Positions 31,441 through 41,281 are shown, counted from the stretch's first letter. The stretch: DNA of 64,000 nucleotides from Entomortierella parvispora E1425 (GCA_020891255.1 BQFW01000012.1:2604001-2668000), one strand, 5' to 3'. Made by a program: numbers and translations. Notes: generated from the sequence alone by a model not told the origin.

Positions 31441-34400
31441 ATGGATCCCACCGTGGTCACCCCAGCCGAGAGTCCCTCTGCCTCCCTCGCTGCATCCTCG
31501 ACTGCGGCCCCCGCCTCGTCTCGTACCCAGAGAACCCCACGCAACAGTGTCCCCAAGAAAGACACCCCTGACAGCTCCTCGTCCAAGGACAGCGCCTCCA
31601 AGGGCCCCGCTGCTGCCCCTGCCAAAAAGACTGCCGACTCGCCTTCCTCGCCTACGGGGCGTCAAGGCGCGCCAGCCAAGAAGCACGCTTCGTCCAAGAC
31701 AAAGTCCGAGTCAGGCGCTGATGGCAGCACTCCCGCCGCAGGATCATCTGCCGATGGCTCATCGTCATCTTCCCCCAGCAAGAGTCGCCCTCAACAAGCC
31801 TCCTCATCTTCAGCAGATGGGGCCAAAAAGACTGGCGAGCGCAGCACCATCAAGAAGCAGCCACAACAGCAGCCTGGCAAAGGCAAAAATACTGATGGAG
31901 CTGTACCCTCTTCCGCGGGCAATGCTGCAGAGTCGTCCTCGACGCCCAAGCGCACTGAAAGGCTCTCGACCGCCAGCAACACCAGCACATCCAGCAACAA
32001 CAACAACCCTGGCAAGAAAAAGGGCGCTACCATTGGCAACAACGGAAAAGAGCCCACCAGGGCATCCACCAAAGGCCCTGATGCCGATACAGACAGTGGC
32101 AGCAACGTGAGCTCAGACACCACGGCCACAAACGCCAAACGATCATCCAGGATCAGAGGCGCCGCAGTAGGCACAACAGCCCCATCCACAGCATCGGCAT
32201 CATCGACGGCCACATCTCCAAAGAAGGCCGGCGCCAATAGCCGCGAAAGCAACAAATCCAAGACTGGTGCACGTCAGCCCAAGGACAGTGCCAGCGCCTC
32301 CGCCATTCGTCCTTCCTCCATCACATCCTCAGGTTCGCTCTTGACGTCTTCTTCTTCCATGTCTCCATCATCCCCTACCTCCCCTGCTTCTTTTGCCTCC
32401 TCGCCATCCTCTCCATTGGCCTCGTCTGCCTTGGATCAGTTCTCTGCTGGTGAAAACGAACATCACAGCCGTCGTGAGGACTCGCCCTTCAAGCAAGGCG
32501 GTGGAGCAGATGTATCCCATATCAAGACTTCGGCCATGAGAGAGCCTTCAACGTTGGGCGCCGGAACTGGCTCTGCCCATTCACCATTGAGTGGTAGCAG
32601 CCCTTCGAGTCGCCGCTCGTCTGCTTTGAACCCGCTGGCAGACAAGTTTGGATTTGGACGACTTGGCGGCCTCCCTACTGTCGAAGAGACAGTCTCTGAG
32701 AAGAAGGGCTCTCCAGAGCCCCATTTCACTGCCACCACCACCACCAACACCCCCACGAGCCAACCTCCTGCTGGAGCAGCTAAGCGTGGACATACCAGGA
32801 GTTTGTCAATGAAGGAGCAGTTGGACCAACTTGGCCTGGAGAACGGAAAGGAGGGCACGCCAAAGACCCTTCAATCGTTGCAGGATATCATCAGCAGTCT
32901 CAAGAGCTTGCCCTCCAGCCATGCAAGCACCGAGGCTGCAGGTAGCACGTCTCGCCATGAGAAGCGTCTCTCCATGTCATCGCTGCCCAACAACAGGAGC
33001 TCTGTGGGCGGTCCCCTGAACCAAAGCCCCTCGACAACCACACTCCACATCTCTCAGCCACCTAGAGGAACCAACATCGAAACAGCGCTGCAGTCCACTG
33101 TCGCCACCCTTCGTCGTCTTTCTCTCTCCGACTCCAAGAGACCCGTTATCAACCTCAAGGAAGAAGAGGCAGGTTCCAACGATTTTTTATTAGCGCCATG
33201 AGAATGAAGGGCAGAGAACGAATGATTGGAATGTACTAACTGTGATCGCATTACCCTGTTTTATACAGACCACTAGCTCAGCTGAAAAGACCAACAACAG
33301 ACGTTCCGTTGCCTTTGCTCCTCGGGACTTGGCCTCAACAGCAGAGGATTCTCTGGAAGGCAGACATAACAGGCGATCTGCCGTGATGGGAGGAGCATCT
33401 GCAGACACCTACACGGCGCCCACTGAATCGTCCTCATCTGCATACAAGCCCAATCGTCGCTCAGTCGTTATTTCACAACAGGAGCTTGATGCCCTCAGAG
33501 AAGGACGTGCCTATGTTCCCCCAACTTTTGGATTCGCCAGTGATGATGAAGAGCCAGATGCGATTGCCGATACACTTTCGGCTTTGGAGGGCAAGGGATC
33601 TCTTAGCAACCGATCAAGCTTCGCTGCCAAAGGACCCCAGAGAGGAGGTTCTGGTGCCAGCGTGGATCCAGACTCGCTTGCGGAATTTGCCTCTAATCTT
33701 CCCAGTCATATGAGAGGTGTTGCTGGCGCTGCTCTTGTGAACAACGATGATGCTCAAGACCGCCGTCGCTACACTACTGCCTTCCACTCTATGGGGCTTG
33801 GCTCGAACCGTGCCTCGGCACTTCCAGCTTCAGGTGCATCAGGAACAGCCAACAAGCGTCTCTCGATGGTCCCTACTACTCGCGAATCGGATCGCAAAGA
33901 TTGGCGCAACTGTATGTTATTGCCTCCTCATACCGCACTATGTGGATATATTGGAGCGTTGACTAACGCTTATTGTTATTCTTTTATTCTGAACAGCAAC
34001 TCCCGTTGCTATGCATGGATCCAATCGCGACAGCATTTCATTCAAGGATAGCGCAAATGGCCGTCGACCACTGTTCTTGGCCCATTTGACCTATTCTGAT
34101 TTCCACTCGCTCTTGACCAAGCAAAAGCACAAGTATGTCCAAGGTGTGTTGCGTATCAACAAGCGCAACCGCTCAGATGCCTACGTCACGGTTGATACTC
34201 TCCCAGAGGGCGACGTCTACATTTGCGGCAGCAAGGACCGAAACCGTGCGTTGGAGGGAGATGTGGTCGGAATTGAATTGATTGATCCCGAGGAACTGCC
34301 TCAGCAGAAACTGGAGGGCAGCAAAGACAAAAAGAAGAGCAAGCGGATGGACGATGCTGTGGGCGAGCCTGCTGAGCCTGATGTCGACGAGATCAAGCCC

Positions 34401-36819
34401 AAGTACTGCGGACGTGTCGTTTCCATTGTCGAGCGCTCTCTCTCGCAAATGTTCTCAGGAACGCTTACCCTTCAGCGACCCAGCGGCTCAAGCAAGAAAA
34501 ACGACCGCAAGAAGCAGGACGAGGATGACGCCAAGGGTCAGCCCCGTATTGTTTGGTTCAAGCCTACGGACAAGCGTGTTCCTTTGATTGCCATCCCAAT
34601 CGACCAGGCTCCTGCCGACTTTATTGAGAACCATGCATCATATGTCCACAAGCTCTTTGTGGCGACTGTGAAGCGCTGGCCTTTGAGTTCTCTGCATCCT
34701 TTCGGGCAGCTGGAGCGTGAGTTAGGTGACATTGGCAATATCGAGATCGAGACTGAGGCGCTCTTGGCGGACAACAACGTTACGACAACTGCCTTTGGTG
34801 AAAAGGTTGAGAAGTGCCTGCCTGACCTGCCTTGGTCTATTCCCGAGAAGGAGCTCAGTCGCCGTCGCGATTTGAGACAGGATTGTATCTTTACAATCGA
34901 TCCTGCGACCGCCAAGGATCTGGATGATGCAGTGTCGTGCACTCGACTTGACGATGGCGCCTATGAGATTGGTGTCCATATTGCCGACGTGTCCCATTTC
35001 ATCAAGGTCGGATCTGCGTTGGATCGCGAAGCAAAGTCCAGAGCAACAACCGTCTATCTGGTCCAGAAGGCGATTCCCATGTTGCCCAACGTACTTTGCG
35101 AGGACTTGTGCAGTTTGACGGCGAATGTGGAAAGGCTGGCGTTCTCTGTTTTCTGGAAGATGACGGAAGATGGCGATGTTTTGAACACGTCTTTCTCAAA
35201 ATCTGTGATCCGCTCCTGTGCACAGTTGTCTTATGATGATGCCCAGAGAGTCATCACCACAGGATCATTGGACCCCAAGGTGGAGGTCTTTGGTCAACCT
35301 CGCTCTTTGGTGGAGGACAACATCAAGGTCTTCTTTGTAAGTGCATCATGAACTGCTTCAGGAGCTGGTTGATATTGTCCGGATTCGAAATGGTTGGGAC
35401 GAAACTAATACTATGATTCATGTTACAAATCCCAATGATAGAAACTGTCACAAATCCTTCGCCAAAAACGTTTCGAGAACGGCGCCTTGTCCATCAACTC
35501 TATCAAACTCAACTTTGAAACGGACGAAATCTTCAACCCTCTTGACGTCTCCGTCTATGAACTGAAGGAGTCTAACCGCCTGATTGAGGAATTCATGTTG
35601 CTTGCCAACATGTCAGTTGCCAAACAAATCTTTGAATTCTTCCCAGAGCAGGCTCTCCTTCGTCGCCATGAGCAACCCCTGGAGAAGCGCATGGTTGACT
35701 TTATTTCTCACATGAACAAGATTGGTCTGGACTTGGACGCGTCGAGCTCAGGAGCGTTGCAGCAGTCTTTGGATGCGATTCAGGATCCGGACGTTCGCAA
35801 GGTCGTGAGGCTATTGGTCATCAAGCCCATGCAGCGCGCAAAGTACATTTGCACAGGCATGCTTTCACCCGAAAAATACCACCATTACGCATTGAACGCG
35901 CCCCTGTACACCCACTTCACATCTCCTATCCGTCGCTATGCCGATATCATCGTTCACCGCATGCTGGAAGCCTCATTGACTGGAGGTAAGGACAAGCGCA
36001 CCAGGAATTAGTTTTGTTTCCAGGACTGTTGGCCTCGTCTCTTTACTAACAAGGTCTTTTTGGTCTTTTTTTCCTTTCTCCCTTTATACGCTTTCAGATT
36101 CAAAATTTTACCTGGGCAAGGAATCTTGCCAAAAGAGTGCTAACCACTGCAACATCAAGAAGGACGCTGCTAAATTGGCCCAGGAGCAATCCAGCCACGT
36201 CTATCTCTCGGTCTTGCTCCACAACATGACGGAGTCCAAAGGCATGGTCATCCGTGATGCCATTGTTGTGCAGGTTCTAGACGCTGCTTTTGATGTTCTG
36301 GTGCCCGAATACGGTTTGGAGAAACGCGTCTATGTCGACCAATTGCCCTTGGATCGACATGCCTGGAACGAATCCTCGGAGACTCTCAGACTTTACTGGG
36401 GCACTGATGCATTCAAGGTCCCTACCGAGGACGACGAGCTCGACAACAGCAAAAACAACCAAAACAAGCGTCTTTCTGCTCTGCCCGCTCGCATGGAGTC
36501 CATGGATCATCCTGACGATGCCACGAACGCTTACGATGACGAGCGTGGTCTCTTTGATGATGAGAGTGATTACGAAGATGAGGACGAACACTCGAGCGGT
36601 GGAAACGGCGCCGGAAGCGATGATGATGATGCCGAAGGTGATGACGAGGCCCGCCGTTTGACTCGAATCAACATCTTTGGACACGTCAAGGTGTTGATCA
36701 CGGCCGATACTACTGTTTCGCCTCCTGTGATCAAGGTCATCGCCGTCAACCCCTATGCCACCACGGAACCAGATACCAATGCCCCGGTCGGCGCCTTTGC
36801 TGCTGGCATCGAAGCCTAA
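31441..36819 (+). CDS. SSD1: Ssd1/Dis3L2-family RNB-domain protein with a long disordered N-terminus; multi-exon
   Basis: RPLFLAHL, GVLRINKRNRSDAYV, YICGSKDRNRALEGD, VWFKPTDKRVPLIAIP, WPLSSLHPFG, TIDPATAKDLDDA, GVHIADVS, SNRLIEEFMLLAN, LLRRH, HYALNAPLYTHFTSPIRRYAD. Confidence 0.92.
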
Positions 36820-38834: not shown

Positions 38835-40142
38835 TTAGTTATAGTCTGGTGGTAGTTGTGGTGGCGCTTCTTCTGGAGGCAAGGGGATATATGGAGGGGG
38901 ACCTTGGCTTCGAAGTCGATTAAGGGTTGGTTGCAAGATACCGGAACGACTGATACCACCAAGCTCTGTCATCTGATCTTCCGTATTGCTTTCAGGTGCT
39001 GGGTTCTGGACCGCAGATCCGCGCCTTCCTCTAGACCCAGCTCCGCGTATGTGTCTGTCAGCAGTGAAGCTAAAGACCGGAGAGGGTGCACTGATCGCTG
39101 GTCCAGCAGGTGATTGTGTGATTTCATTGGGAATATTAGCGCTGGGGGCAGCAATTGACCGAGTGAGAGGTGAGGTCGGTGGAGAAAGAGTGGTGGTGGT
39201 AGTCGTCGTTGTGGTCGTGGTCGTGACGGTCGTGAGGATAGGTCGGGATGTATTCGGGTCGATTTGAAGCGGCGATTCAGATGGTTGTTCGGATCCAAGT
39301 AAACCGTGTTGCGACGAGAGCGAGTCTCGCTGGCTGCGGGTGCGTTGCGTCGCCAAGTGCAGCTGGTAATGAACTTGCTCCGGGTACGCCACTGATATCT
39401 CTGGGTCCACATAAGGTTGGTCAAGGACATAGGCGCGGTACTGGGGCGGCGGGCATCCGGCTAAAAGGTTCATGAAAAAAGAGAACAATAAGCTTAGTCG
39501 GGGAAATTTAGGTCTGTGCAGCTGGCTCGCGCTGTCACGATGACGATCTCTGAATTTCATTTTTTTTCCCTATCTCTCTCTTCACTGCTCGTTCCTGCGT
39601 CCCTCATTCTCGCTGTCCCCTTATTCCATCAGGGATGCAATGAGAGCCACTAGCCGGCAATCTGGAGCAAGAGGGGTAGGAGGAGGAGGAGGAAGGGGGG
39701 GAGAGAAAGGAGAGGAGAGACTCTCCGCTGCGGAGCCCAGTCTCTGAGACGTAGATCTGTGGACGTTGTTCTTACCTTCGTCAACCTCCTCTGCGCGGTT
39801 TGTGCCTCCGTGTACGCTCCCGTTCTCTAACTGTCCTTCACCACCTTCAAGAGCGAGTCTTCGTAACCTGCGGTCGCGTCGGACCTTGTGAATAGTATAG
39901 AGAATCGCGGCCAAGATACCCAAGAAGACAACAAACGAGACGGCCATCTCGACAGATTGTCCAGCCCCAGAGCCACCAGAGGTCGAGGTACCGCCGCTGA
40001 CTGTTGTTGTTGTGGGGGCAGGCGCAATTGAATCTGTTGGAGTGTAAGAGGGTGGTATCGTGAAAATGGAATGTGTGGCATATGGCACTGTGTAGGTGGG
40101 TGACGCCGAAGAGGACGCCGTTGTGATCAATGGGGTCGCCAT
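38835..40142 (-). CDS. Single-pass membrane protein with PPxY motifs (B); exons 40142-39776, 39460-38835
   Basis: S/T-rich N-terminus, TM MAVSFVVFLGILAAILYTI, then HKVRRDRRLRR. Phase-1 intron 39461-39775 joins to AGCPPPQY...GPPPY...LPPDYN*. Confidence 0.75.
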
Positions 40143-40801
40143 TGGAGTTTTCGATATGCAGGGACAGAGTAAAGCTCAATGGTGTAGAAGAGGTGTCTGA
40201 GAAGAGGGTGGGGTTGGCGGATGAAAAAAAAAAAAAAGGTTGCAGGACGGAAAGGAAGAGGATGAAGAGACAGACAGCCAGGACGAAGATGAACTAAGAG
40301 GCCGTGCCCCGAGCACATGTGAGTATTTATATCTTTGTTTTTCCTGCCCTAATGCCCACCCCTCGTGCAGACATCTCTCAGGTATCAACAGTTGCGGGGG
40401 GTGAAAAGGCACGACCGAGGCCCTGCCATCAATTTGTCTCTGCCGTTTTTTTTTTTTCTTCTTTGCGCCAGGGGCACCTGGTACTTTTCATCCCGCTGGA
40501 CAGGGCATTGATAAGAGACGAGAAGCTGCGAGCCCTTCATCAACCCCATGCAATCGAGCAACACACACGCTCACCATAATGACGACAATTGCACTACCTT
40601 TGCACAAACAGCGCCCGGGTGAATGTGTTTCCCGGCAGAGCACCCCTTAATTTCAACATATGTTACCGGGCGTGGGTGTCACGTTCTCACGTCACCGTCG
40701 TCCTCCTCCGCCCAGGCCACTTTCTTTGATGCACCAACTCACACCACACTTTATTTTTTTTTGCCGCTCTTTTTACGTCTCCTCAACTCAGCATAGGCCA
40801 G

Positions 40802-41281
40802 CCCTTCCTCCCCTCGTGCACCTTCACAATTATCGCTCTGCATCCCTACCGTTCCTTCCTCCGTCTCCTGTCCCTCCTCCTCTCGTTCCTTGCCCTTGTT
40901 TTGGCCATGGCCCACCGTTTCGATCTTGCCACCTATACATACTTTGATGTCAAGGTCCAGCCAGAGGCCGTGGACCAGGTCCTGGCCTCTACTCGCGCCG
41001 CCTCCGCCTCTCACAATGGCTCTCTAGTAGGGGTCGAGTACATGGGCCATGTAGGCGAACTCACCAACCACCTCCTCTTCCGGGCGCCAAAGCACAATCC
41101 TGCTTACCACTCCAGCCAAGGACCAGCGCTTCCTACTGGATCGGGTCCGCAACCACATGTTGACGAGGAGCAAGAGGATCAAAGAAATAAGCAAATTGTG
41201 GACACTATTTCAGCCATCCATGGAGTCGTTCATGTGGATGTCCAAAGTCTGCGTCAACGTCCAAAGAGAGATGAGCTTTGA
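40802..41281 (+). CDS. Stand-alone subtilisin/kexin (S8) prodomain-like protein ending in KRDEL; true start uncertain (ATG at 40907, or upstream exon near 40660)
   Basis: YTYFDVKV...GVEYMGHVGELTNHLLFRAPK...AIHGVVHVDVQSLRQRPKRDEL*. An in-frame hydrophobic stretch RSFLRLLSLLLSFLALVLAMA precedes it. Confidence 0.65.
   Translation, partial: PFLPSCTFTIIALHPYRSFLRLLSLLLSFLALVLAMAHRFDLATYTYFDVKVQPEAVDQVLASTRAASASHNGSLVGVEYMGHVGELTNHLLFRAPKHNPAYHSSQGPALPTGSGPQPHVDEEQEDQRNKQIVDTISAIHGVVHVDVQSLRQRPKRDEL

Follow-up and report, generated by a model that had tools for sequence, protein, structure and literature searches.

A free-standing protein resembling kexin/proprotein convertase prodomains in Mortierellaceae, with a candidate AUU-initiated signal peptide

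Kexin/furin-type convertases govern how secreted proteins, pheromones, toxins and effectors mature. The prodomains of these enzymes fold the catalytic domain and, after autocleavage, stay bound to it with the R-x-K-R end in the active site. In animals, convertases of the secretory pathway have the small partner proteins 7B2 and proSAAS, which serve as helper and inhibitor and carry a dibasic C-terminal segment that is cleaved by the enzyme; to our knowledge, these two animal-specific proteins are the only dedicated protein partners of kexin/furin-type convertases. Stand-alone inhibitors of MEROPS family I9 include yeast Pbi2, which is cytosolic, and Pleurotus POIA1. An I9 inhibitor has also been reported in Trichoderma (bioRxiv 10.64898/2026.05.05.722857), Plasmodium SUB1-ProM is a stand-alone propeptide-like inhibitor (PMC6993865), and a prodomain-less ectodomain of the proprotein convertase (PC) PC1/3 is rescued by co-expressed prodomain, that is, by action in trans (PMC13419460). 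Here we describe a gene in a 64,000-nucleotide stretch of Entomortierella parvispora E1425 (BQFW01000012.1:2604001-2668000; the whole stretch is called the window below) that encodes a prodomain-like domain of the kexin/PC type as a protein of its own.

The prodomain-like open reading frame (ORF; window positions 40907-41281, + strand) encodes 124 amino acids followed by a stop codon at 41279-41281, and its AUG lies in a strong context (GCC ATG G). An original prediction, made from the DNA sequence, had singled out this ORF by its RQRPKRDEL-stop end, and both the coordinates and the sequence are as claimed, with the C terminus of the protein reading ...VVHVDVQSLRQRPKRDEL. The stop comes three codons past the KR pair, so a catalytic domain is not joined to the ORF. 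No S8/subtilase domain or remnant occurs among the ORFs within about 7 kb (a DIS3L2-like exonuclease, an RCR-like and a DUF202 protein, the rest unassigned), as had also been predicted, and the next gene downstream lies on the minus strand. The open frame spans 40802-41281, the same frame being open already from 40730 without an in-frame ATG between 40730 and 40907; directly before the ATG at 40907 it reads RSFLRLLSLLLSFLALVLA in frame, and a longer reading of the upstream frame is ...HPYRSFLRLLSLLLSFLALVLA.

Sequence profiles of the family point to the prodomains of PC1/3. We searched 177,635 sequences of the PDB with family profiles of 14, 29 and 102 sequences. The 14-sequence Mortierellaceae profile placed a PC1/3 prodomain first (E value 0.027); the 29-sequence profile, which spans two phyla, retrieved 9fid_D (9.2e-6), 9fic_A (1.2e-5) and 1kn6_A (2.6e-5) as the only matches with E < 0.01, the next match having an E value of 1.4; and the 102-sequence profile found PC1/3 prodomains at 5e-4 to 1e-3. 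The S8 prodomain pattern read in the original prediction is therefore borne out by three profiles that match nothing but PC1/3 prodomains in the PDB. The profile alignment pairs GVEY-G-VGEL-NHLL-F with the core of the PC1/3 prodomain, and it stays in register to the end, where V-HVDVQ--RQR-KR falls on ...VIWAEQQYEKERSKR, the primary cleavage site (RSKR) of that prodomain. In the window, the core motif GVEYMGHVGELTNHLLFRAPK (41030-41092, + strand) comprises strands 2 and 3, with G47, G50 and L57 invariant or nearly so, and strand 4 with the tail, VVHVDVQSLRQRPKR (41225-41269, + strand), runs to the R-x-K-R end, RQRPKR (41252-41269, residues 116-121), of which R118 is invariant and R121 nearly invariant across the family. 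Between core and tail lies a variable loop (residues 63-84; 41093-41158, + strand) that differs in length and sequence between species. It occupies the place of the second, internal cleavage site of convertase prodomains, and no conserved dibasic site was found in it across the family alignment.

The Pfam and fold results point both ways. PF16470 (S8_pro-domain) was the commonest Pfam match when 29 members were scanned singly (10/29, best E 1.8e-4), and these matches extend to the last profile position (79 of 79), which falls on the KR pair; all of them are sub-threshold, with a top score of 20.2 bits against a gathering score of 25.5 bits. The window protein itself gave no match to PF16470 even at E 10, and an exhaustive library-wide profile search returned no kexin at E < 1e-3. 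The fold agrees with a prodomain but is widespread. Two AlphaFold2 (AF2) models (predicted local distance difference test (pLDDT) 73-74) have beta-alpha-beta-beta-alpha-beta topology, a disordered loop at residues 66-83 (pLDDT < 50) and a floppy C-terminal tail, and the furin-bound PC1/3 prodomain 9fid_F superposes on the model with Z 7.0 and a root-mean-square deviation of 2.9 over 72/72 residues. Domains of the ACT, LRP/AsnC, NapD, MgtC and Mesd types reach equal scores, at Z about 7. The comparison with PF16470 and I9 that the original prediction had proposed came out divided: the sub-threshold PF16470 matches and the AF2 topology agree with an S8 prodomain, PF05922 (I9) matched no member at E up to 10, and the fold does not discriminate. 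Measured against the PF16470 family, profile similarity, fold and the R-x-[KR]-R end were found; the gathering score and a linked S8 catalytic/P domain were not.

The likeness might be convergent or too distant to interpret, the protein being a generic ferredoxin-like domain (of ACT, NapD or Mesd type) that serves, for example, as an endoplasmic reticulum (ER) chaperone for another client. Foldseek and VIA-align do put LRP/AsnC, NapD, ACT, MgtC and Mesd/Boca level with or above PC1/3 (Z 7.0-7.6), in keeping with the sub-threshold Pfam matches and the absence of kexin from the library-wide search. These fold-level rivals carry no sequence signal, however, whereas the sequence profiles select PC1/3 prodomains only, their E values improve as the profile broadens from 14 to 29 sequences, and the match contains the characteristic G-x-[IV]-G-x-L-x-[ND]-H and keeps its register up to the closing R-x-K-R. 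Foldseek ranked the furin-bound PC1/3 prodomain fourth, and no other of its leading matches had a higher sequence identity. As the ferredoxin-like fold is too common, with dozens of such domains tying, we dropped the fold search as proof of family, and the case for a prodomain is built on the sequence profiles together with the tail that aligns in register. On these we judge remote homology to the convertase prodomain, as a stand-alone derivative, highly probable, and a generic domain improbable.

A word-based search retrieved 13 orthologs, all from Mortierellaceae, all unnamed and without a Pfam domain, with identities of 71% in Gryganskiella and 57-67% in Dissophora, Mortierella, Linnemannia and Haplosporangium. 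The exhaustive profile search, made with a profile of Mortierellaceae alone, gave only 10 hits and added Actinomortierella, one Ceratobasidium protein and a metagenomic cluster; two of its hits (P0020 and P0021) were set aside as low-complexity or cystatin-repeat proteins. Searches with mixed alignments extended the family to more than 130 relatives, mostly of about 90-130 amino acids (range 87-221), in Mortierellaceae and in Agaricomycetes that include Rhizoctonia, Psilocybe, Lentinula, Mycena, Agaricus, Amanita, Tulasnella, Jaapia and Russula. None has a Pfam domain, nearly all are 'hypothetical protein' or unnamed, and the nearest hits in the ESM Atlas are unnamed Basidiomycota clusters only. 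Two gene models of Lobosporangium transversale (P0017 and P0018) hold roughly the first 62 domain residues followed by unrelated sequence, which in P0017 is the adjacent M16 peptidase; both probably reflect wrongly predicted splicing, not genuine variants.

This conservation bears on whether the ORF is a decayed KEX2-type fragment or pseudogene that has lost its catalytic part, as a lone prodomain with a stop three residues past the cleavage motif might suggest. Among 102 aligned sequences, Y12, G47, Q113 and R118 are invariant and the stop falls 3-5 residues past the dibasic pair with few exceptions; the same stop, length and tail recur in 28 Mortierellaceae members, with small variations in 74 Agaricomycete members. 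The gene is also intact while its synteny differs between lineages, and no S8 remnants lie downstream. Because of the invariant residues and the fixed stop position across the 102 sequences we exclude decay, to which we give next to no credence: judged by its sequence, this is a conserved gene, and the possibility of a KEX2 remnant that the original prediction had itself raised is contradicted by conservation in two phyla.

The position of the protein start is a separate matter. The domain-start Met is conserved in both phyla, its AUG is flanked by a purine at -3 and by G at +4 in all loci examined, and it is where nearly all gene models begin, in Mortierellaceae as in Agaricomycetes. This fits a cytosolic protein made from the AUG at 40907 only, in which a prodomain-derived domain has been reused, the tail is a binding or localization motif and the leader is untranslated. 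We examined 13 loci, of which 11 are from Mortierellaceae (ten species besides that of the window; L006 and L007 are duplicates, L001 and L003 close relatives) and two from Agaricomycetes. In most Mortierellaceae loci pyrimidines prevail in the 120 nucleotides ahead of the domain ATG, and stops tend to be missing from all three frames; open frames upstream are cheap in such a region, as a cytosolic protein would have it, and since pyrimidine richness opens all frames we did not use the open frame as evidence of coding. Pyrimidine richness does not account for the hydrophobicity. The signal-like stretch that the original prediction had noted before the ATG is present, and in 10 of the 11 Mortierellaceae species examined (window included; 11 loci), which are all the leader-carrying ones, a hydrophobic stretch occurs upstream only in the gene's own frame, with maximal 15-residue Kyte-Doolittle values of 2.2-3.4 in frame 0 and at most 1.5 in the other frames (nine scored loci). 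Nor does an untranslated leader account for the enrichment of T at codon position 2 (0.46-0.60). The translated leaders look like signal peptides: a short n-region with an Arg end is followed by 13-23 apolar residues, and the conserved Met is immediately preceded by small ones (for example, VLA, TLA, VIA, TVG and VDA).

How such a leader would be translated is suggested by a conserved island, ACC ATT CC, upstream of the domain ATG. No usable in-frame upstream ATG was found in the leader-bearing Mortierellaceae loci, and the apparent initiator 'M' of P0013 and P0047 was rejected as evidence of ATG-initiated signal peptides, these being TTG/CTG starts picked by prokaryotic gene callers. The island reads ACC ATT in L001/L003, L004, L005, L008 and L009, which represent four species and a metagenome contig; the window has ACA ATT, and Gryganskiella (L002) has AAA ATT. 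In these 8 loci (7 species) A[CA][CA]ATT is always in frame, lies 78-105 nucleotides before the domain ATG and is the only in-frame ANNATT within 300 nucleotides upstream. An Arg is conserved at leader position 8 from ATT in the window, L001/L003, L005, L008 and L009 (His in L004); Gryganskiella differs, with Arg at position 4. All 8 loci use ATT, never ATC, despite the C-rich region, which suggests that the codon, and not isoleucine, is what selection has kept. Between ATT and the domain ATG there is no ATG in any frame, and in most loci none within about 100 nucleotides upstream either. In the window the candidate start, ACA ATT (40826-40831, + strand; AUU with A at -3), precedes the domain ATG by 26 codons in the same frame, and the leader that it would open, (M)IALHPYRSFLR-LLSLLLSFLALVLA (40829-40906, + strand; 26 codons), has a basic n-region, an h-region of 14 residues and, at -3 to -1, V-L-A. 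Haplosporangium has GTC ATA at the matching site. In Actinomortierella wolfii (L010:2440-2503) an in-frame ACC ATG CCC TCT stands where others have ACC ATT CCC TCT; this substitution, like the in-frame ACC ATT at a fixed distance from the conserved Arg, is left without explanation if the domain AUG is the sole start. The upstream ATG of A. wolfii lies 19 codons before the annotated start, and the deposited model begins at the second ATG.

The original prediction had reached the leader by a different route, a splice from 40660-40671 to 40802, which we abandoned: the ATG at 40660, the GT of the donor at 40672 and the AG of the acceptor at 40801 are all missing at the aligned positions of the closest relative. 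More generally, enumeration found no ATG-plus-intron route to the leader in 5/8 loci; in two loci, not a single YAG acceptor occurs from the last in-frame stop to the h-region. An out-of-frame ATG at 40729 of the window would, if transcribed, open an ORF (40729-40947, + strand) that overlaps the domain ATG; the transcript start therefore probably lies within about 100 nucleotides upstream of the ATT at 40829.

Initiation at the AUU has its own difficulties. AUU is a weak start codon, the 18-residue leader of A. wolfii is weakly hydrophobic, and Lunasporangiospora selenospora (L013:2400-2500) has an in-frame hydrophobic stretch before the ATG (WFLSLVLILSIILAS, read by eye) preceded by an in-frame TGA 32 codons upstream, with no near-cognate start before the hydrophobic stretch. 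In this species CCC ATC CTT CCT TGA resembles a decayed ACC ATT CCC, and the loop sequon described below is also absent; the exception could stem from a faulty assembly or an intron, or the ER form could have been lost in this species. With L013 as the exception, the loci show what is expected of a non-AUG extension, namely a conserved in-frame near-cognate codon, no ATG between it and the main start, and a coding signature. We consider it likely that translation begins at the AUU at 40829, which has a Kozak-like context, and thereby adds a signal peptide, and two isoforms, ER and cytosolic, would possibly arise from AUU and AUG.

Other marks of the ER in Mortierellaceae coincide with the leader. 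D-E-L and the stop (41270-41281, + strand) form a C-terminal RDEL with R121, which fits the KDEL-type retrieval pattern PROSITE PS00014 ([KRHQSA]-[DENQ]-E-L). An N-G-S sequon (N37; 41015-41023, + strand), at which we infer that the protein would be glycosylated, lies in the loop that joins helix 1 to strand 2; N-x-S/T occurs at this loop in 23/28 Mortierellaceae members, compared with any sequon in 8/74 Agaricomycete members. N-E-S (P0015, P0048 and P0049) and N-G-T variants show that the sequon itself, not its exact residues, is kept. The original prediction had asked whether the C terminus is conserved. Within Mortierellaceae it is, with an invariant R-Q-R-x-K-[KR]-D-E-L end and hence KDEL or RDEL in 28/28 members; in Agaricomycetes the dibasic pair is followed by GGDEL (35), GGEL (8), DEL (7), GDEL (4) or other ends including GEEL, DEF and AGGDL. 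Strict [KR]DEL and the sequon are thus confined to the leader-bearing lineage, which runs counter to a purely cytosolic protein, and as [KR]DEL, sequon and leader form a lineage-specific package, an ER-lumenal form in Mortierellaceae is supported; on this pattern of sequence features we lean towards it.

The mushroom homologs temper the proposal of ER residence. They lack a signal-like leader (the single-exon homologs of about 95 amino acids in Psilocybe cubensis (L011:2501-2788) and Ceratobasidium (L012:2501-2806) are both leaderless) and mostly end in KRGGDEL; that part of the original prediction is plausible for Mortierellaceae and weakened by their Agaricomycete relatives. Because leaderless mushroom proteins keep the R-x-KR-(GG)-DEL tail, it cannot be an ER signal alone, which is as a cytosolic protein would predict; the ancestral role may have been cytosolic, and the presence of R-x-[KR]-R with an acidic-Leu end in proteins that appear to be cytosolic lowers our confidence that the tail signifies only a kexin site plus retrieval. 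A ubiquitin-like 'RGG' tail was ruled out for the mushroom proteins, given the predicted ferredoxin-like rather than beta-grasp topology and the absence of GG in many members. Weighing the mushroom proteins and the conserved AUG against the leader, the sequon and the strict [KR]DEL, we find a solely cytosolic protein in Mortierellaceae rather unlikely.

For the ER-lumenal form, the following course of events can be proposed, in which the mRNA of Mortierellaceae is probably read from two starts. Initiation at the upstream AUU (40829) would add the 26-residue signal peptide and send the domain to the ER, where the sequon would be glycosylated and to which [KR]DEL would retrieve the protein from the early Golgi; the strong AUG at 40907 would yield the same domain in the cytosol. 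Within the secretory pathway, the protein would most likely bind the catalytic domain of kexin in trans, as prodomains do, and either help it to fold or restrain premature dibasic cleavage before the late Golgi. A cut after KR would remove DEL and leave a product-type prodomain end as bound inhibitor, and the protein may be a longer-lived binder because its variable loop is without a conserved dibasic (second cleavage) site. By analogy with convertase prodomains, a role as kexin regulator (inhibitor or chaperone in trans) is plausible while falling slightly short of an even chance; the picture as a whole, a free-standing prodomain protein with an AUU-derived ER form that regulates kexin in trans, seems to us evenly poised. 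A self-limiting regulator of two compartments, in which the kexin cut after R-x-K-R drops the retrieval signal, the inhibitor leaves with the enzyme and the AUG form has a separate cytosolic job, is an unlikely, speculative extension.

The neighbourhood of the gene varies. In five Mortierellaceae loci (L004, L006, L009, L010 and L013) it lies between genes for CybS (succinate dehydrogenase subunit D) and an M16 peptidase that looks from its sequence like mitochondrial processing peptidase; in the window and in Gryganskiella, a C12orf66/KICS2-like neighbour takes the place of this pair, being the minus-strand gene downstream in the window (PF09404 was recorded in the syntenic Gryganskiella locus, L002). 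Because neighbours differ between Mortierellaceae loci, the prodomain-like gene has moved yet stayed intact. Upstream of it and divergent, two Ser/Thr/Pro-rich ORFs without a Pfam match occupy 38835-40142 (- strand), one with a run of 12 Thr and the other with a single hydrophobic segment. Farther away, three successive ORF pieces at 34011-36819 (+ strand) carry OB_Dis3, RNB and Dis3l2_C_term domains and look like a gene for a DIS3L2-type 3'-5' exoribonuclease divided by short introns.

We found no description in the literature of a free prodomain of the kexin/PC type or of the family to which the window protein belongs, and no self-limiting prodomain-in-trans system described for kexin or furin. 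If the protein is a partner of kexin, a natural free prodomain paralog in two fungal phyla would offer a new handle on how convertases are restrained in the early secretory pathway; if it is an inhibitor, it would be a ready-made scaffold for specific inhibition. Mortierellaceae, with leader, sequon and [KR]DEL, stand in contrast to mushrooms, with none of these and the same dibasic-acidic tail.

The conserved ACC-AUU is a clean candidate for a non-AUG codon that supplies an ER signal peptide and that standard gene callers overlook. Comparable starts are known in other fungi: an AGG AUU start adds a targeting signal to 6-phosphogluconate dehydrogenase (PGD) of Ustilago (PMC7214817), and Neurospora cpc-1 has conserved near-cognate AUU/CUG/ACG codons (PMC5487733). 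As in those cases, the near-cognate codon is conserved, in good context and in frame with the main AUG without an intervening stop or ATG, and an extension that bears a sorting signal permits dual localization; unlike them, the candidate extension would be an ER signal peptide, not a peroxisomal or other signal.

Compared with kexin/PC prodomains (PF16470; 1KN6, 9FIC and, with furin, 9FID/9FIE), the protein shares a domain of about 80 residues with beta-alpha-beta-beta-alpha-beta order, a G-x-[IV]-G-x-L-x-N-H-[YL]-L-F core and a last strand followed by a flexible tail to R-x-K-R. It differs from them in having no catalytic domain, with only D-E-L past KR, in having no conserved internal dibasic site, in the long variable loop of Mortierellaceae and in scoring, as a family, below the Pfam gathering threshold. 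The likeness to 7B2 and proSAAS is conceptual only, the proposed role being that of a small secretory convertase partner with a dibasic C-terminal segment; the animal proteins are unrelated in sequence and fold, are not prodomain-like, have no KDEL-type end and are restricted to animals. Closest in kind are SUB1-ProM and the I9 proteins, in which a separate gene likewise encodes a propeptide-like domain alone and of which those characterized inhibit their cognate subtilase in trans. We know of none described with an R-x-K-R-DEL end, and they resemble propeptides of the subtilisin/proteinase K type or of SUB1, whereas the family of the window protein is of the kexin/PC type. What is new here is thus probably a stand-alone subtilase propeptide-like protein of the kexin/PC type, a kind of protein already known from other types of subtilase.

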